From Trichosphaerium sp. ATCC 40318 (Eukaryota > Protista > Tubulinea): a DNA stretch of 64,000 bases. The notes beneath the pieces are model-generated. The model ran no database searches, was not told the DNA's origin, and saw only the letters and a program-made list of their open reading frames with translations. The stretch spans positions 1 to 64,000 of the forward strand of contig JALMLS010000156.1 of assembly GCA_038496445.1 (NCBI GenBank), in the 5' to 3' direction. The translations under genes were made by a program, and so were the position numbers. Of this stretch, positions 2,076 through 59,346 are shown in pieces; positions within the stretch are counted from its first letter, which is position 1; each line of letters starts with the position of its first letter.

Positions 2076-2907
2076 TCAAATCCTGTTTGCTGAATAGGAT
2101 TTGATGGCGTTGACTTTAAATTGTTGGTGTGCAATTATTTTCCAAGCCATGATAGGAACTGTTCACATTGAATCGTTGAATAGTAAATAACGCCATAAAG
2201 TGTGTTATACTTTCTCTTTTAAGTTTTTTTGTGGTGTTGATGATATTATTATTGATTATGTATCAGTTGTTTCTTTAACTACCTTCTTTTCAAAAAATTG
2301 TTTTTAGTGAACATGTGAAGTTCACGTGATCTACGAAACTTGTAGTTTACACTGCCGATGGTGTTTTGCTGAAAATAAAACTGTGAATGAGCGTCAAATT
2401 ACTAGGATAGACAGCATAAACTACATTTTAGCTAGTCAGTACTACTGACAAAATAAAATACAAATCCTATTCATCAAACGAGGGATTTGACATTCAAATA
2501 CTTGTACACAAAAGAACGAAGGACAAAATACAACAATTAGCTACCAAAAATGTCGTTCTTTGCTGGAGACTTCTAGGTGATATAATGCCGTAAAAGACGA
2601 ACAATATGCACCCACAAACATTCTATGTCAGTGATGACAACATCAACAACCTGATAGATAGATCAGGCATTATCAGTGTTAGTTGAACTGTACAAACGCA
2701 AAGGCATGGAAGTAAACCAAGAAATCATTGAACTGACAATAATTCAGGTGAGGTTTTGTTTTAATAGAAATAGTGATACACCATTATGAGTGTTTTGAAG
2801 TGTAATCAAATAACTAGAATAGTAAGCATATAGTTCAGTTTAGCTTTCTCAGAACCCACAATTAAAATGTACACGCCCAAATCCTATTCATCAAACAAAG
2901 GATTTGA
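2076..2907. repeat. Three copies of a palindromic element CAAATCC(T)-N11-15-(A)GGATTTG (2076-2104 inverted, 2461-2490, 2878-2907)
   Basis: Direct comparison; copies 2 and 3 share about 70 bp of extended similarity. Confidence 0.8.
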
Positions 2908-3002
2908 CGTTCAAATCTGTACACACGAAAGAAAAACGATCAAAATACAAAATTCAAACCAACCAAAACAACAACACTTCTCAACAACTCAAAATAAAAC
3001 AA

Positions 3003-3314
3003 ATGGGTGGATCAATCTCAATTGCCAACTTTGCCAAAAACAATGTCTTTGTACGAATAACAACTGCTGGCGAAGGTTTTCTTGTCAAGGAACTTAATGC
3101 AGAACAACAAAATACTACAAAAGCTGAAGGTCTTGAAGCTGTATGGTATGATGTTCAAATTATTGATAACGGCAAAGCTGTTTGGATCAAAGGAGTTTAT
3201 GCTGGCTCGCATCCAACTCTGACCTACAAAGATCAATCAATCACTGCTCCTGCAAACGCAACACCAACCAAGGAAGAAGTGGCTGCTTCCATTGCTGCTG
3301 TCAATAAAGTATAA
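3003..3314 (+). CDS. Small intronless hypothetical protein (103 aa) with a probable N-myristoylation start MGGSIS
   Basis: ATG at 3003 after an A-rich leader; open frame; AATAAA downstream. Confidence 0.7.
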   Translation: MGGSISIANFAKNNVFVRITTAGEGFLVKELNAEQQNTTKAEGLEAVWYDVQIIDNGKAVWIKGVYAGSHPTLTYKDQSITAPANATPTKEEVAASIAAVNKV

Positions 3315-3401
3315 GACACTGAATGATGTAATATGCTAGTGGTTCATAACAATAATGCAGAATTGTATGTCAACAATAAACACTTTTTATTGTAATCTAA
3401 C

Positions 3402-3531
3402 TTATAAACTCATTCCACCGTCAACAAGTATCTGAGATCCCGTGAAATACTTTCTTTTTGGTGATAATAATAGCATAACCGCTTGAGCAAGATCATCAAG
3501 GTCTCCAAGCTTCTTCAATGCAGTCATTGAC
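3402..3531 (-). pseudogene. Orphan terminal exon of a short-chain dehydrogenase paralog
   Basis: SMTALKKLGDLDDLAQAVMLLLSPKRKYFTGSQILVDGGMSL* matches the last exon of the SDR at 15142-15272; no upstream exons seen. Confidence 0.8.
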
Positions 3532-4599
3532 CTTAGCTAACTGGTCATACTACTAGTCAATCTTTCCAATTCGACTTGTAGTTTATAGCTGTTAATTTTT
3601 ATTGTTACGTTTAAAATAGAAGCGAGCAGAGTTCGCAGGTACACATATTGAAGAAAAAGCTATGGCAAATGATTTTCGTAGGTGGTACTTCCTTGTTTTC
3701 CTTTAAACAATCCTGATGCTAAACGACTGAAGTCAGTCGTGACGGTAGTACTTCAGCCGAAAATCGGCGACTCAGTCGCCATCTATTTCAGATGATAGAA
3801 CTTTATGAGCCACAAAGGTTGTTGGGCGATCAAACTAGTTTCTTGTGAGAACATTTCGTGTCAAAAAGCGCTAGAAAACTCATGACCAGAACTAGATATT
3901 TTAACATGTTAGGTCACGATTTTGTAGATGAAGTATTATAGCATTCCCTGATACTTTGACAATCTGTAACAGTTGAATCTTTTAAGGCACTTCTTTTTCT
4001 ATTGTGAACAGGCGAGGATGCGTAGACTTGATAGTTTTATGTTTTGCTACTCTAGAATATGTAGATGTATTCATAAGTACATGTTGTTCTCATCTTTATT
4101 TTGTTGTGTAGACATACGAATTGTAACACAATCTACTGGAGTGGATTCATTGCTCCCAGTTTTGTGCAAAACAATTCGAGTATAGGACAGCGAATGCAAG
4201 CGAATATGGAGCGCTGTTCGCTTTAGTCCCAACCTTCACTCACAAAATGTCATCCAAAGCGCACTTTATGATGTTGGTGAACGTCTAGGCATGACAATTC
4301 CTATGGCCAAATATACTGTATAAGGAGTAGACATAAACCCAGAACTAGCAGAGAAATTGTCTACCGAATAGGCTATTAAGTCCTTGTTAGGCAAACATTC
4401 CTTATTTAGTCACATTATATGAACAGTTTGCAAGTAAGTGAAAATATGGGAGAGCAACATAAGCAAAGCTGAATATCTTATAATTACCTTCTTTGAACTC
4501 TTTTCGAGGTGAAAATATGGGAGACGAAGGAATAGTTAGTCCGGATCAATTCTTGTTTGTTTGGGAAGTTTTACCACTCTACAATAAACCATTGTTGTC

Positions 4600-5319
4600 A
4601 TGATGAGCACCACGTATACACCAGCCGTATTCATTACACTATTTGCAGTGTCTGTTTGCTCTTGGGTTATAACTTCCATGCCATTGTCAAAGTCTAGTTT
4701 TGCTTTTACAGGTGTATCAACTCTTCCAACTGAAAATATGAACTACACTGGCGTCTATAAGTACTATACTTTTCCAAATGGTACAGCCTTGATATACCGC
4801 AATATTGCAAATGTTACGTCATCTGGATCAAGTACAGAAGTTCCTAGCATTTTTTATGGACGCATAGAAGGAAAGAAGGTACGACACGAGTTGATACAGT
4901 TGTGTAAAAACTAATAATGTCATCCTAGCTTTGGACATGTACACAGTTTAGTGATGGGTGCTGCGTTCCTCAAGAACTTAACTGGGGAGACTGTATCGGT
5001 AAATGGACCGATGGAGAACTACGCTGTATGGACGCTCTTGGTAGCAAAGTAATCTCTTCAGCTAAAGTTGTAGGTGGTAAGTTAGAGTCATAAGTAGCCA
5101 TTTATCTAGATACTGTGTGGCTAATACTTCTACAATAGATGTTCTCATAGACTTTACTCAACTGATAAGTTTTCCGAACAATGACAAAGCCTTCATTTCG
5201 TATAAGATGAAATCAACTGAGCAGTTTGGTACTCCCACAATTGATGAGTTTACAGTAAGAAATACTTGTTATGTGAAGATCTAATTTTTTTTTTGCAATA
5301 GCCAAAGTCGATTTGTTAA
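4600..5319 (+). CDS. Secreted Cys-containing glycoprotein, 4 exons (possibly ependymin-like fold)
   Basis: Signal peptide; N-glycosylation sequons; GT-AG introns give a continuous frame ending DEFT|PKSIC*. Confidence 0.6.
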
Positions 5320-6011
5320 GTACCCTTAAAGTCATACAATAAATACTTGCCTTGCTATACTGTCTATTTGTTCTTTTGTGTTGTCTTTTTTTGTCAGTTT
5401 ATGCAAGTTGACACTTCAATCAGCTGCGAGGAGCTGGGTTCTGTGTTGATTTATGAGTTCTGTTGTAGCATTTTGTCATTGTTTGGTTGTTTAGTTTCTT
5501 AGCTTTAAATAGCATGTTTCAAGGTTGAGTTAATGTGAACTTTGCAGTGAACAAAACATGACTTGCATACATCTGTATTTGACCGTCTAGTAGGAGTTAT
5601 TTTTGTCTAGTACCGCTAGTCAATTTGATTAGTGCAATACTGTTTTTTCGGAACCTGCGTATTCCGCTTTTTAACAAAGAACTTTCTTTCTGCACAAGTA
5701 GATAGATATTGTAGCCAGTAAAATATGCTGAATGTGGTTGTTGCTATTGATTCAAAATTTACAAAAAACAAAGGCATTTGAACAGTTTCAGAAAATTACT
5801 AAGTTGTATTTCAAGAGATTTCGAGAAGCATACTTTAGATGTTTTTACTCACCTCAGAACCATCTTGCACTACAATCACTACTTTGAACATGTGCCTATC
5901 ATGCTGTACTTATAGGTGGTTAAAAATTTTTGCAATTCGTTTATGCTGTACCAAGGAAAAGTACTGACTACACGTTTTTGTTCTAAAACTACACTTTATT
6001 CTACTTTTTTA

Positions 6012-6896
6012 TTAACCTCGTACATTGATGTAAGACATATCGTGAGATGTCAAATAATTAGCCCTATGCCGTGAAATATCATTTGGTACTGCCTGTACAT
6101 TGATACTTGGCATACCAGCTTGTTTAAAGCACCATAAACGGCGGTTATCAAGTGCATACCATTCACCATCTAAACGAACAACACGAATTTCTGGGATGTC
6201 ATCTGCGTCCAAATACCCATTTTCAAGGTCATTGGCAACATCGTATATATACGAACCTGTCTGAAAGTACGGAGCAATAGAAGTGTTGGTGTAGTTGATA
6301 ACATCTGGATCAAGTGATGTTGGGTCAATCTCATCTTCAATTGCTTTCAAAGAATACGAGCAGTAATCTTCCTCGCCACTAGCAGCACGGACATACCAAT
6401 CTTTGAAATCATCTGCCATTGAGATTTCTACAACGTATTCATCACGTGCAAATTCTGCAATACGTTCTGGAAGGTCACCGCTCCACCAAGACGAGCCATC
6501 AGTGAACTGAACGAAGTATGTATCATATGAGAATGCAATTGTGTGAACGCCACCGCGAGAGCTTTGACGACCTCGTAATCTATTGCTAAGAGCCCCAGGG
6601 ATGCCGGAGTATGCGTAATCGCCGTCAGGATATGTTACAAAGTACGAAGAGTCAGGACCAAAGAAAACGTTCTCGCAGTCTCCGTCGCTAATAATATCAT
6701 CTAAATCATCGCTTTTTACACTCCAACAACGTTTGTTGGGTGTTTCAAGGTAGTATTGGCGATTTTCTCCCACTGCAAACTTTTCAAGGCCGTATTTGTT
6801 AATTATCTTTCCTACGCCTGATATATTCCAATGTGTAGTACCAAGGTGATCTACAGCAATATAGCCGTCATCGCATAAACTGACTTGAGAGAACAT
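6012..6896 (-). CDS. Intronless protein: N-terminal beta-repeat domain plus C-terminal ParB-like domain (copy 1)
   Basis: ORF from MFSQVSL; C-terminal motif DPDVINYTNTSIAPYFQTG...IPEIRVVRLDGEWYALDNRRLWCFKQ. Confidence 0.75.
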   Translation of the reverse strand: MFSQVSLCDDGYIAVDHLGTTHWNISGVGKIINKYGLEKFAVGENRQYYLETPNKRCWSVKSDDLDDIISDGDCENVFFGPDSSYFVTYPDGDYAYSGIPGALSNRLRGRQSSRGGVHTIAFSYDTYFVQFTDGSSWWSGDLPERIAEFARDEYVVEISMADDFKDWYVRAASGEEDYCSYSLKAIEDEIDPTSLDPDVINYTNTSIAPYFQTGSYIYDVANDLENGYLDADDIPEIRVVRLDGEWYALDNRRLWCFKQAGMPSINVQAVPNDISRHRANYLTSHDMSYINVRG

Positions 6897-7139
6897 GTCT
6901 TCTATCGTTAGCAACAGTTACACTTGCTAAATAAAAACGGTGTACTTGGGAGCTAATTTCTAAATAAGACGTTAACTTAAGCTTCATTAAGTTCAACAAA
7001 AAACCGGTTTATTTTGCTAACTGCCAGTACACGTGATCGCTACAATGTCAAGTAACATTAAAAGAAAGCTAGTGTTAACAAACACAGCAATCAATTTGCC
7101 TTTGTAACATAATGTAAAAGGTCACAGAAACAATCTTAA

Positions 7140-8039
7140 TCAACACCTGACTGTAATGTGTCTCATATCATGTGATCTCAAATAGTTCATCTTCCGCTTT
7201 GATAAACCATTGGATACTACTTCTACAGGGATTCGAGCCATACCTCCTTGTTTGAAGCACCATAAACGGCGGTTATCAAGTGCATACCATTCACCATCTA
7301 AACGAACAACACGAATTGCTGGGAAATCTTCTACTCTCTGATACACGCAGTCTAAATCTCTTACAACATCGAATAAAGACTGTCCTGTTTGAAAGTGTTG
7401 AGCAATCGAACTATTGGTGTAAAGTATGTCTTCCGGATTGAGTTCTTCCGGATAGTATTCTTCATTCACCTTTTCTTCAATCTCCTTCAAAGAAGCTGAA
7501 CAAAAATCCTCTCTGGTACTGGAACGAACGTACCACTCCCGACATTCGTTTGACATTGCTATTTCTTCAACGTAGTCTTCATTAACGAACTCTACAATGC
7601 GTTCTGGAAGGTTCCAACTGTACCAACCAGAGCCATCAGTGAACTGTATAAAATACGTATCATACGAGAAGGCAATGGCTGTAACGCCTATCTGAGGATC
7701 TTCTAGGTCTTCTAATCTGTTATGAAGAGACCTTGGGATACCGGAATACGCAAATCCGCCCGAGGAATACGCTACAAAGAACGAAGAGTCAGGACCAAAG
7801 AATACTGTTTCTACATCTTGGTCATTTCGGATGATAGAGTCCAAATCATCGTTAATAGCTCTCCAGAATGTATTCTTCTCGGTTTCAATGTAGTATTGAT
7901 CGTTTTCCCCGATTGCGAACCTTTTTATCGATCCAGCATCATTTATTACCTCTCCTACCCCTGGCATATCCCAGTGAGTACTGCCAAGGTGATCTAGAAC
8001 AATATACCGGTTTTCGCACAAACTGACTTTAGAGAACAT
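7140..8039 (-). CDS. Tandem paralog of the 6012-6896 ParB-like domain protein (copy 2)
   Basis: Collinear 299-aa ORF with an identical IRVVRLDGEWYALDNRRLWCFKQ block. Confidence 0.75.
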   Translation of the reverse strand: MFSKVSLCENRYIVLDHLGSTHWDMPGVGEVINDAGSIKRFAIGENDQYYIETEKNTFWRAINDDLDSIIRNDQDVETVFFGPDSSFFVAYSSGGFAYSGIPRSLHNRLEDLEDPQIGVTAIAFSYDTYFIQFTDGSGWYSWNLPERIVEFVNEDYVEEIAMSNECREWYVRSSTREDFCSASLKEIEEKVNEEYYPEELNPEDILYTNSSIAQHFQTGQSLFDVVRDLDCVYQRVEDFPAIRVVRLDGEWYALDNRRLWCFKQGGMARIPVEVVSNGLSKRKMNYLRSHDMRHITVRC

Positions 8040-9976
8040 TGTATTCAGCCCGTGTAAACAGTTTCAGGCTGAAGTGTTGCAATGGCTATCAAAATAATAA
8101 TTGTGAGTCTAGATTGTTCACGTACACCTAACTTAACTTGAAAACTAGTTGAAATTCAGTCACTTTGGACAAGCCACCCTGAGGTTTTATGTATGCAAGT
8201 TGAGTGGGTGGTAAACGGCTATAGCTGGGTGTAACAAATATAAGTACCCAATCCAAATAAACTACCAATACCTTTCGAGCATAAAGAAGGTTTTACACTA
8301 TTGTCATAAAAACTGTATTCAACACTCGTTTTAATTGTACCATCTTTTTTTATTTGTCCCAGGGCACGTGATTAACACTTGCACATTTCGAGACTTCAGC
8401 AAGTCTTGTGACCAGCCTCAAAACTAGAGAAAGAAAGTTCACATAGCTGTATTGGACTTTAGGGAATTAGTATAGCTACATTTCAACATATGGCTCTGCC
8501 TCCTTCGAAAAAGGTACGATCTCAATGCCTTGTGTAAATAACGCTTCAACAGTTTAATGGCAACCAGGTTGGCTGGAGTTTGCCAGACTGCTTCACCTAC
8601 CAATCGAGCTACACAGGGATATTTGTGATCTTGATTTGAAGTGTTTTCGAAATACGCAGCAAAAGCAAAGTTTGATGACTAGAAAAGCAGATCCTCAACT
8701 ATTGTATAGTCAAGGATGGTGATACAAGGCGACGCAGTATACTCACTACAACCCAAAAGCACACTAGTACTTACAATGTCAAACAGGTCCTGTTTCTATA
8801 GGAATTCAAAGAATCAAAAACACGATTGAACTCGAAGAGCTGCTCTCATTCGGCGGAACCGTAAAAACTTAGTTCCATTGAAAGTCGTGGCAGATGATCG
8901 GTAATCCGATAGTATTGTACTTTAAATTTTGGACATCTTCCTTGAAATTTACGTGTATGGAACTATATACATAGAATTGTCAGTTTGCTTGAATTCCACT
9001 TCGTTGATGATCAATGACATTAATAGTACTTCGTATGCCCACGTACGATACAATAACTGGTACAGGGGGCGCGTTATAATATGTGTAACACAATTTAACG
9101 GAAATTTCTTCAACGAATTCATCTTTGATTGTTTCTTGAATTAATGAGATTAGGACATCAGCCAGGACTCTTTATGATGTAATTGTCCGAGTTGTTTTCT
9201 TCCTTTTGACAAAGCTTATAACGGAATGTTTGAAGAAGGTAGACCAAAAAGTTTGGGTTTTCAATTGTTCCGATTTGTCACTTCTGTTTACTTTTTTAGG
9301 TAAAACCTTTATGGAATAAGACCCGTCAGAAAACTACGACGTACTGGTACTAGTGGTTATACTTGCTTTTATATTTTCTGTACGAGTAAGTTTAGAAAAA
9401 GTAAATGTCTGAAATTTTTTGGTTTTCTCCTCATTTCTTCAAATCAGCCGAACAAACAACACACGGAGTGTTTCAATTCGCGAACACCTTTAATTAAGAA
9501 TGGTTTCCAGTACTTTAAACGCTATACGCTGTAAAGTTGCACCATTGCTAGCACTAGTATTAATCCTTACAGGTACTCTTTCTTCCTTTCCACTCTTGTT
9601 TCGTATAGCCGCTTTCTTTTTGCTTTTTTTTTTTGTTTGCCTACACGCAACTTTCAAAAATGACTTCCAGTCGTTTCTATTCAATGTACTTGAGGTGTTG
9701 GCCTCGCAAAGCTCAAACCGTCGAAAGGAACCTTGGTTTTGTACTTGACGCATTTTAATACAAGAGTAACGCTTTTGCACCTTCCACAAGCAACTTTTTT
9801 GGTTTTTTCAGAAATTTTTCTTTTCCTTCCTTTTTGATCTTTTCCTTTTCGAAGTTGCAAACCCAATACAATTTATAAATCGATTATAATCAAATTACAA
9901 ACTCCCTTTATTAAACCAAATCCAAATATTTATTTTACACAAAAACAAGAAAAAAGGGGTAATCGGTTGGTTGGCA

Positions 9977-56806: not shown

Positions 56807-57742
56807 ATGGAATCAGATAGCGAAGCGTACATAAAGTGGCCGTTATTATCAAAGCAAGCATCGGTATGCTCAAGGTTTGATAGTGATCTTAAAAAACAAG
56901 GTAAATGGTTGAAATACAATGATAGTAAAATAGTGACTCAACGATCTTATTCTCATGGACTCAGAGAAGGTATCACTAAAACTTGGCGAACAAGCGGTAT
57001 GCCAATAAGAGAGTATAATTACGCGAATAATAAGCTGGATGGAGAGTACAAGAGATGGTCAAAAAAAGGGGTCTTGAATGAACATTTGTTTTACAAGAAT
57101 GGAAAGAAACATGGAGAAAGTAAGATGTTCGATGATTATGGTAATGTCCTTGAGCATTGTTTTTATAATGAGGATGAACTACACGGAGAATATAAACAGT
57201 GGCATGGTAACGGCCAATTAAAACATCATTGCCATTATGATAACGGCGAGTACAATGGTGAAAGAAAACTATGGTTTAGGAATAGTCAACTGAAGAGTCA
57301 ATGTACTTACATAGACGGAAAGATCCATGGAGTAAAAAAAGAGTGGCATTATAATGGCCAATTACTATCCCAATATATATATATGAATGGCTTGGTAGAA
57401 GGAGAGAAAAAGGAGTTCCATAAAACTGGAAAATTGAAATCCAAAGTTTTGTTCAGAAATGGTTTAAAAGAAGGTGAAGAGAACACTTGGCATGAGAATG
57501 GTCAGCTAGCGAGTCAGTGTTTTTATTCAAAAGGTAATAAAATAAAAGGTGAGACAGGATGGCATACTAATGGCACAAAGATGTATTACTGCGGTTATGT
57601 CAATAACAAGAAGGAAGGAGAAGAAAAATGTTGGTATTCAAATGGCAAATTACAAAGTCGATGTTTTTATATTAACAACAAGCAACAAGGAGATAGAACA
57701 GTTTGGTTTTCTAATGGACAGATATCAAGTCGCAGGGTATAG
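56807..57742 (+). CDS. Intronless MORN-variant (YwqK-like) repeat protein
   Basis: About 11 repeats of 24 aa, consensus GExKxWHxNGQLxxxCxYxNGxx. Confidence 0.85.
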   Translation: MESDSEAYIKWPLLSKQASVCSRFDSDLKKQGKWLKYNDSKIVTQRSYSHGLREGITKTWRTSGMPIREYNYANNKLDGEYKRWSKKGVLNEHLFYKNGKKHGESKMFDDYGNVLEHCFYNEDELHGEYKQWHGNGQLKHHCHYDNGEYNGERKLWFRNSQLKSQCTYIDGKIHGVKKEWHYNGQLLSQYIYMNGLVEGEKKEFHKTGKLKSKVLFRNGLKEGEENTWHENGQLASQCFYSKGNKIKGETGWHTNGTKMYYCGYVNNKKEGEEKCWYSNGKLQSRCFYINNKQQGDRTVWFSNGQISSRRV

Positions 57743-58380: not shown

Positions 58381-59346
58381 TTAATAATAGACACTAAGGA
58401 TAACAGTATTGGCGTGTTTCAGACCTTCATCTGTAACCAAAGTATCAGTAAGATCAATGGTATGGACACCTGTCAGCGATTTGATACCTTCATCAGTAAC
58501 TGAAGTACCACGAAGATAAACGGTATGAACGCCTTTGAGGTATTTGAGACCTTCATCTGTAATTGAAGTACCATTAAGATTAATGGTATGGACACCTGTT
58601 AGCGATTTGAGACCATTGTCAGTAACTGAAGTACCATCAAGCTCAATGGTATGAACACCTTCCAGTGCTTGGAGGCCTTCATCTGTTATTGTAGTATAAG
58701 CAAGATCAATGGTATGGACTCCTTTGAGTGCTTGGAGACCTTCATCTGTTATTGTAGTGACTCTAAAGAGATCAATGTTATGGACACCTTGAGTGCTTTA
58801 AGGCCTTCATTTGTTATGCCAGTATCACCAAGATTAATGGTATGAACGCCTGCAAGTTCTTTGAGGCCTTCATCTGTTATTCCAGTTCCAGACAGATTAA
58901 CGGAATGTATTCCTCTGAGCGCTTTAATACCATCATCACTCACATTTGCACATCTCCCAATGTTGAGAGTATGAACACCTGCAAGTCCAATAGCCTTGAG
59001 ATCGCTATCGTTTATTTCAATTAGAGAGTTTTGTGATGTTTGTATATGGCGACATCCTGCCAGCAAAGAATACAATGTGTTGTTCATAGATGAATCTAAG
59101 GCAATGGTGGTATTGTTGACAATGCCTTTGTATTTGAGAATCTTTAAAATATCAGGAACACACTTTATACGAATAAATTCATATCCAACAACATCGTGAA
59201 TGAGATCAGACATCAAACGACATGATTGAGCAACACAAAATCTTGACTTTACATCTGTACAACTAAGAATATGATACGCAATAATCTCATTTGGCAAATC
59301 AACAAAGTTCAACTTGTTAGATACTGTTTGGGCTCTGTGAGCTCAT
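58381..59346 (-). pseudogene. Intronless F-box plus about 9 LRRs of 21-22 aa (GVHTIxLxGTxITDEGLKxL), two apparent frameshifts
   Basis: DLPNEIIAYHIL F-box; 1-nt deletion at about 58790, after which the repeats continue in another frame to TAA at 58381; ATG 59346 is 1 nt out of frame. Confidence 0.75.

Follow-up and report, generated by a model that had tools for sequence, protein, structure and literature searches.

A tandem pair of Trichosphaerium genes joining a propeller-like domain to a predicted ParB/sulfiredoxin-fold domain of the Tox-ParBL1 family

A 64,000-nucleotide stretch of the genome of Trichosphaerium sp. ATCC 40318 (contig JALMLS010000156.1, positions 1 to 64,000; hereafter, the window) carries two intact open reading frames (ORFs) that follow one another head to tail at 6012–6914 and 7140–8039 of the minus strand. 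The encoded proteins, here copy 1 and copy 2, align from end to end with 57% identity (BLASTP E 4e-125). Each is composed of an N-terminal five-bladed propeller-like domain and a C-terminal domain of roughly 100 residues, which is predicted to adopt the ParB/sulfiredoxin (Srx) fold and whose sequence gives good support for membership of Tox-ParBL1, a family known from the tips of bacterial toxins. In our judgement the best explanation, and a reasonably probable one, is that this two-domain protein serves as a putative nucleoside triphosphate (NTP)-dependent intracellular effector in a conflict or stress response.

An alignment of 31 ParBL1 domains (A1) was the input both for an AlphaFold2 (AF2) model of the C-terminal domain and for a family profile. 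The model has a predicted local distance difference test (pLDDT) score of 94. A Foldseek comparison with the PDB gave ParB (6sdk) and Srx (6ky4) as top matches (best E 1.3e-3, template modelling (TM) score about 0.5), and among the matches listed all were ParB, Noc, KorB, sulfiredoxin, SerK, SbnI or Atu1540. VIA-align, which is independent of Foldseek, was run against 48,161 chains, of which 11 reached a Z of at least 2; the ParB/Srx fold accounts for 10 of these, the best being 2hwj and 6ky4 (both Z 8.2, with 6ky4 aligned over 87 of 89 residues). The full-length AF2 model returns the same ParB/Srx matches. When A1 was compared by hhalign with a ParB_N alignment built from seven bacterial ParB genes (E 1.3e-4, probability 53%), LDNRRLW was placed on AGERRWR, so that by position DNRR would be the counterpart of the GERR/GxxR triphosphate-binding motif of ParB. 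The single scores are middling, and the fold call is convincing because the match lists are unanimous and a HHpred result of 2012 points the same way. The original prediction, made from the DNA alone, had assigned this domain to the ParB/Srx fold, and the models bear that out.

The domain nevertheless lies outside the established sequence families of this fold. Neither copy matches the Pfam ParB_N model (PF02195) at E ≤ 1, and the whole genome holds no match to it; weak matches occur in 3 of the 31 relatives, with a best E of 0.031. As no score rises above the curated cut-off, the domain is placed outside the Pfam family and within the wider fold only. The catalytic cysteine motif of sulfiredoxin, FGGCHR, is absent from the copies, in which the equivalent stretch is LDNRRL and contains no cysteine. 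Searches of PDB sequences with single sequences and with the profile gave chance matches only (polyphosphate kinase and centaurin, E > 0.5); Pfam, NCBIfam and PADLOC have no model for either domain of the window proteins, and either domain by itself found almost no matches in a word-indexed search of proteins.

Tox-ParBL1 was named as a divergent ParB-like toxin domain by Zhang, de Souza, Anantharaman, Iyer and Aravind (2012, Biol Direct 7:18; PMC3482391), with NGK_2271 of Neisseria gonorrhoeae as type member. It is marked by an N-terminal Ser/Thr that classical ParB lacks and by an [NT][RT][RT] motif, mostly N-R-R, equivalent to the DGHHR/GERR of ParB; it caps RHS, filamentous-haemagglutinin and HINT-processed toxins and is also present in several eukaryotic lineages (PMC3482391). 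Across 143 domains the DNRRL motif is strongly conserved (N in 138, each R in 136 and L in 142), and the N-terminal column is Ser or Thr in 122 of 139 domains. This column is filled by S211 in the YTNSSI motif of copy 2 and by the matching serine in the YTNTSI motif of copy 1, and both copies keep all family-invariant residues.

The relationship to bacterial toxin tips is direct, with 41–45% identity and pairwise E values of about 1e-20. In whole-library searches the domain matched P0091, in which an RHS repeat, a dockerin and PT-HINT precede ParBL1 (E 2.6e-9), and P0150, in which ParBL1 follows PT-TG and PT-HINT (E 6.1e-8). The link that the original prediction had drawn from the DNRRL motif to ParB-like tips of bacterial polymorphic toxins is upheld by this identity to the tips of RHS, PT-HINT and PT-TG proteins. 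A scan of bacterial genomes yielded ten ParBL1 loci with 34–58% identity, mostly 40–45%, in Clostridia, Ruminococcus, Streptomyces, Acetivibrio, Gracilibacillus, Acidobacteriaceae and others. RHS repeats were recognised at two of these loci, PT-HINT at two and an RHS-associated core at one. At three loci ParBL1 directly follows the '...VLVHN' junction of a pretoxin HINT; at others it ends RHS proteins, in open frames of about 1,770 residues that run off the locus. A small ORF on the same strand always lies 4–60 nucleotides downstream of the bacterial ParBL1, encoding either a family of about 127 residues that has no Pfam or NCBIfam model or, at loci L017, L019 and L021, a DUF7660 protein. These ORFs sit at the expected position of an immunity gene and are candidates for that role. 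The assignment of both copies to Tox-ParBL1 rests on the fit of their motifs to the published definition and on homology to these bacterial tips with candidate immunity genes downstream.

For the N-terminal domain, the full-length AF2 model (pLDDT 95.3, predicted TM score 0.79) divides residues 1–182 into five units, each made of three strands and a helix, ahead of a linker helix, and self-alignment of the sequence likewise gives a five-fold repeat. The short beta repeats listed in the original prediction are thus real, although their number is five and not four. Structural matches include tectonin 2 (5fsb, Z 7.5), fishelectin (4ruq, Z 6.7), the RCC1-like domain of RPGR (4jhn, Z 6.8) and five-bladed GH43 enzymes. 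As these scores fall in the range of generic fold resemblance, they do not allow a lectin or guanine nucleotide exchange factor function to be assigned, and on the strength of the model we describe the domain as propeller-like and no more. It has no Pfam model in the window proteins or in any of 40 relatives, and its structural look-alikes in the Atlas are unnamed clusters. The N-terminus of the copies is the first propeller strand, and no hydrophobic leader or membrane segment was found in either protein; both are predicted from their sequences to be soluble and intracellular.

The same propeller is found elsewhere in the genome with other C-termini. On contigs C334, C28 and C530 it is fused to a C-terminal C3HC4 RING finger (zf-C3HC4_3, E 1.9e-10), with a Ser/Pro-rich linker and a coiled stretch between the two domains; the C530 copies (L011 and L013) look frameshifted or truncated. 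A further protein, on C11, carries a different C-terminal region (Table 1). Since the propeller is joined to ParBL1, RING or other ends, it appears to be an exchangeable module, and its fusion to RING supports a modular recognition-plus-effector design. In ten other ParBL1 proteins, no Pfam match was found in the partner domains.

A search of the genome with the ParBL1 profile returned the window pair, their alleles on contig C25, full-length paralogs on C157 and C112 and a degenerate copy on C3. The count is five ParBL1 loci, one haplotype-specific fragment and one degenerate copy. The window contig (C131) aligns with C25 over about 7 kb (window ~2560–9520) at about 97–98% identity with indels and can be read as the alternative haplotype to part of that contig; copy counts taken from the assembly are therefore inflated by haplotigs. 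The fragment, an ORF of 105 residues, lies some 2 kb downstream of copy 1 on the C25 haplotype. Its start, MFS, resembles that of the full-length genes, and from there it passes at once into ParBL1, as if the propeller had been deleted. The C3 paralog has lost both motifs of its ParBL1 domain (Table 1) and is an exact match to the transcript-derived protein P0005; it is possibly a pseudo-enzyme or a regulator.

The continued expression of this motif-degenerate paralog would suit a domain that acts without catalysis, as a nucleotide-gated switch or a nucleotide- or nucleic-acid-binding module that regulates the propeller in the way that CTP gates ParB clamps, and in canonical ParB, Noc and KorB this fold and motif do serve as a CTP switch. 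However, neither a helix-turn-helix (HTH) nor a dimerisation domain was found in the copies by Pfam scan or in the AF2 model, the solved single-domain members of the fold (Srx, SerK and SbnI) are enzymes, and a harmful activity is implied by the bacterial homologues, toxin tips that are accompanied by candidate immunity genes. We regard such a switch as very improbable.

The gene structures agree with the original description of two intronless tandem paralogs of about 300 residues. Similarity between the two copies at the DNA level runs from the ATG to a few bases past the stop codon. Copy 1 (294 residues) is likely to start at the ATG at 6896 rather than at the TTG at 6914, because the transcript-derived protein P0001 begins there; P0001, from the MMETSP collection, is identical to copy 1 but for one residue (S264R). 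Besides copy 1, the paralogs on C112 and C3 have transcripts on record. Only 11 ORFs of at least 150 residues are present in the 64-kb window, which fits the earlier characterisation of the genome as intron-rich, with the single-exon pair standing out, and all full-length paralogs in the genome are single open frames.

Both genes are under purifying selection. The ratio of non-synonymous to synonymous substitution rates (dN/dS) between the copies is 0.24 overall, with 0.20 for the propeller and 0.32 for ParBL1. A 5-kb comparison of the haplotypes gives 67 differences in 3206 aligned non-coding positions and a single one in 1779 coding positions (p 4e-12), the flanks having diverged by 2.1%; the C25 allele of copy 1 differs by a single synonymous base, and that of copy 2 is identical in DNA. 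These near-invariant coding alleles, together with the low dN/dS, indicate that both genes are maintained. Synonymous divergence (dS) between the tandem copies is about 1.2, near saturation, so the duplication is old. A pair of decaying or non-functional duplicates could account for a copy 2 that has no transcript on record, and a truncated and a motif-degenerate copy do exist elsewhere in the genome. Against this, both ORFs are intact with their family-invariant residues kept, and the dN/dS of 0.24 and the near-identity of the coding alleles, at zero and one base against 2.1% in the flanks, largely refute decay, to which we give next to no credence.

One segment of the pair departs from this pattern of divergence. 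A 72-nucleotide block spanning the DNRRL motif, codons 241–264 of copy 2, is identical between the copies at 70 of 72 positions. Identity at third codon positions is 0.96 in the block against about 0.4–0.6 elsewhere, and identical residues share the same codon in 20 of 21 cases inside the block but in 80 of 138 outside it (Fisher p 4e-4). The original prediction had noted this near-identity of about 70 nucleotides and offered gene conversion or strong constraint as its cause. In the C112 paralog a nearly identical peptide is encoded by other synonymous codons (6/16), which makes constraint at the nucleotide level unlikely; a short gene-conversion tract among the closer copies fits the sequences better.

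Relatives of the two proteins are scattered across eukaryotes. Matches at E ≤ 1e-3 were obtained for 791 of 1.84 billion representative proteins, many of them only to residues ~197–280, as short stand-alone proteins or with the domain at one end or in tandem. Layouts were counted for the best 152 of the 791 representatives, with clusters defined at 50% identity: 65 have a propeller followed by ParBL1, 26 are short ParBL1-only proteins, 25 consist of propeller repeats only and 5 carry tandem ParBL1, the remainder having ParBL1 with other partners. Two-domain relatives of about 300 residues include proteins of Acrasis kona, the chytrids Quaeritorhiza and Borealophlyctis and the foraminiferan Bolivina. 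A longer relative of 466 residues is found in Chara braunii, and those of Polarella, Styela and Dimorphilus have other layouts. The named hosts span four eukaryotic supergroups. In a tree of the domain (about 110 columns) the five copies of this genome form one clade with support of 98/99; the tree contains no supported bacterial sister or donor lineage and leaves the deeper order unsettled, and the approximately unbiased (AU) test does not reject a tree in which the bacterial domains are constrained to a single clade (p 0.38).

The original prediction took the genes to be horizontally acquired. A recent capture of a bacterial polymorphic-toxin tip, put to use as a toxin, would be in keeping with intronless genes in an intron-rich genome and with the 41–45% identity to bacterial tips, and a bacterial origin of eukaryotic ParBL1 has indeed been proposed (PMC3482391). 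As a recent event it is contradicted by the whole two-domain layout being common to Acrasis, chytrids, Bolivina and at least 65 clusters, and by the tree, which joins the copies of this genome in a single clade and provides no donor, with a split between bacteria and eukaryotes not rejected. The old duplication and a GC content at third codon positions of 0.32–0.39, similar to the AT-rich host genome, argue in the same direction, and no RHS or HINT module, secretion or delivery module or adjacent immunity-like gene was found at the window genes. We consider a recent capture highly unlikely. Given the spread of the two-domain layout, the sequences instead place the genes in an old eukaryotic family of patchy distribution, which has expanded locally in this genome.

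A giant-virus origin was also considered and was rejected for lack of evidence in IMG/VR and BFVD. The former contained a single locus, in which an orphan cassette of a bacterial toxin tip and a candidate immunity ORF lies beside an IS110 transposase, and the latter only generic RCC1 propellers and ParB-fold proteins.

In the mechanism that we propose, the propeller would bind a ligand or partner protein and so supply recognition, and ParBL1 would be the catalytic end, binding an NTP through DNRR and either hydrolysing it or transferring a phosphoryl group to a target, like sulfiredoxin, SerK and the CdiA toxin ToxB. The family would have expanded locally in this genome and been partly homogenised by gene conversion. 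The NTP-dependent activity is suggested by what is established for the same fold: ATP-dependent phosphotransfer in sulfiredoxin and SerK, CTPase activity in ParB and ATPase activity in ToxB. A role in conflict or stress seems to us the most likely, ahead of a core housekeeping step, in view of the bacterial toxin relatives, the patchy distribution, the variation in copy number and the RING-tipped sister proteins. A role in defence or as a toxin, as originally suggested, is plausible on these comparisons.

The serious rival is a domesticated ordinary enzyme with a routine ATP-dependent repair or kinase-type activity, in which toxicity has been lost and the propeller serves as a substrate adaptor. 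The domain has the fold and size of sulfiredoxin (6ky4), the genes are under strong purifying selection with almost invariant alleles, and solubility and an intracellular location are predicted for both proteins; moreover, the incorporation of ParBL1 into core eukaryotic systems has been suggested (PMC3482391). Such an enzyme would be at odds with the patchy distribution, with a lineage-specific copy number that includes a haplotype-specific fragment and a degenerate copy, with the fast divergence of neighbouring paralogs to 57% identity, and with motifs that are those of toxin tips and not the FGGCHR of sulfiredoxin. We judge it unlikely, while giving it more weight than any other alternative.

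Several observations weigh against the interpretation of the proteins as conflict effectors. Strong purifying selection and near-identical alleles would fit an ordinary cellular enzyme equally well. The fold scores are middling (Foldseek E ~1e-3, TM ~0.5, Z 8.2), the hhalign probability is only 53%, and the structural matches of the propeller are generic (Z 5–7.5). Copy 2 has no exact transcript match on record, and no homologues of the two bacterial candidate immunity families were found in the genome, in searches that had no positive control. As far as we could find, the family described in 2012 has been the subject of no bench study: the literature gave no measured activity for any ParBL1 domain, and the sole family-defining paper found is computational.

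A bolder extension of the effector reading, which we hold to be doubtful, is that protists, chytrids and algae possess, in these two-domain proteins, a widespread and unrecognised intracellular sensor-effector system. The propeller would then sense a foreign or danger ligand and release a ParB-fold NTP-dependent toxin, in the style of abortive infection. As a part of the same joint reading, and just as doubtful, the RING-tipped relatives would route the same signal to ubiquitination, and motif-dead paralogs such as the C3 copy may be built-in regulators.

The coordinates of the features are collected in Table 1. Elsewhere in the window, single-exon ORFs encode a MORN_2-repeat protein of 311 residues (56807–57742, plus strand; E 1.7e-32) and an F-box/leucine-rich repeat protein (58749–59312, minus strand).

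Table 1. Features of the tandem genes, their paralogs and the bacterial loci. Positions without a prefix are those of the window; L numbers refer to other loci, with contigs in brackets.
Feature	Position	Strand	Basis or remark
Copy 1 coding sequence, propeller + ParBL1	6015..6896	-	294 residues; stop codon 6012-6014; ORF and MMETSP transcript protein P0001
Copy 1 five-bladed propeller-like domain, residues 1 to about 178	6363..6896	-	alignment to copy 2, repeat alignment
Copy 1 Tox-ParBL1 domain, residues 195-294	6015..6314	-	A1 family profile, 2.2e-38
Copy 1 YTNTSI motif	6276..6293	-	read from sequence
Copy 1 DNRRL motif, D250-L254	6135..6149	-	read from sequence; conservation
Copy 1 arm of near-identical block	6120..6191	-	70/72 nucleotides identical to 7248-7319
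Copy 2 coding sequence, propeller + ParBL1	7143..8039	-	299 residues; stop codon 7140-7142; ORF and 57% identity to copy 1
Copy 2 five-bladed propeller-like domain, residues 1-182	7494..8039	-	AF2 model, self-alignment
Copy 2 Tox-ParBL1 domain, residues 200-299	7143..7442	-	AF2, Foldseek, VIA-align, identity to toxin tips
Copy 2 YTNSSI motif with conserved Ser S211	7404..7421	-	conservation of Ser/Thr column
Copy 2 DNRRL motif, D255-L259	7263..7277	-	conservation; hhalign, DNRR on GERR
Copy 2 arm of near-identical block, codons 241-264	7248..7319	-	70/72 nucleotides identical to 6120-6191
Empty site in window haplotype	3873..3893	.	C25 carries ~465 extra bases holding the 105-residue ParBL1 ORF (blastn)
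Stand-alone ParBL1 ORF, 105 residues	L008:1440-1925 (C25)		ParBL1 profile, 1.4e-34
C3 paralog	L007:1492-2373		propeller intact; LDERKL for LDNRRL; YT..SI lost
Propeller-RING proteins	L010:835-2082 (C334), L012:835-2082 (C28); also L011, L013 (C530)		zf-C3HC4_3 match
Propeller + C-terminal region of ~140 residues	L009:1063-2094 (C11)		C-terminus without Pfam match
Candidate immunity ORFs, ~127 residues	L014:430-813, L015:5310-5690, L016:5319-5717, L018:2092-2430, L020:5328-5717, L022:5319-5735, L039:5255-5704		conserved, directly downstream of ParBL1 tips

Tox-ParBL1 recurs in bacterial toxins and in many eukaryotes, and the window proteins, being small, soluble and intron-free in their genes, with high-confidence models and obvious candidate catalytic residues, are convenient for probing this branch of the ParB fold. 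The existence of ParBL1-tipped and RING-tipped versions of a single propeller opens a route to identifying what is recognised by the system. Should the activity prove harmful and regulated, the proteins would add a case from eukaryotes in which a toxin domain of bacteria has been put to new use within the cell; should it prove to be routine enzymology, they would amount to a second sulfiredoxin-like story. No mention of the propeller–ParBL1 fusion was found in the text of PMC3482391.

Among known systems, the propellers of tectonin, RCC1-like and GH43 proteins have blades on which the N-terminal 182 residues superpose, but there are five blades here, each of only three strands and a helix, and no sequence model matches them. 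Sulfiredoxin is likewise a single domain of the ParB/Srx fold of about 100 residues in eukaryotes and is the joint best structural match, although the copies are without its FGGCHR cysteine motif and have no detectable sequence relationship to it. The N-terminal CTPase domain of ParB/Spo0J, Noc and KorB shares the fold, with DNRR standing in place of GERR (Box II, or P motif) at the start of the following helix; the copies differ in escaping the Pfam model, in lacking an HTH or dimerisation domain and in carrying the extra conserved Ser motif.

Two bacterial toxin systems are also comparable. ToxB is a ParB-fold ATPase toxin of CdiA in which the arginine of GxxR is needed for ATP binding and toxicity (bioRxiv 10.64898/2026.05.05.722872). 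It sets a precedent for the ParB fold as a toxin tip, in its case with a cognate immunity protein, but it belongs to the classical branch detectable by ParB_N (GNHR motif), is delivered by contact-dependent inhibition in Enterobacterales and is not a ParBL1 domain. The bacterial Tox-ParBL1 tips differ in their setting, since the domain here forms the C-terminus of a short eukaryotic protein, predicted to be intracellular, behind a five-bladed propeller, without a delivery module, HINT cleavage site or adjacent immunity gene. With these tips the window proteins nonetheless share the conserved N-terminal Ser/Thr, the N-R-R motif, the predicted ParB fold and direct sequence similarity.

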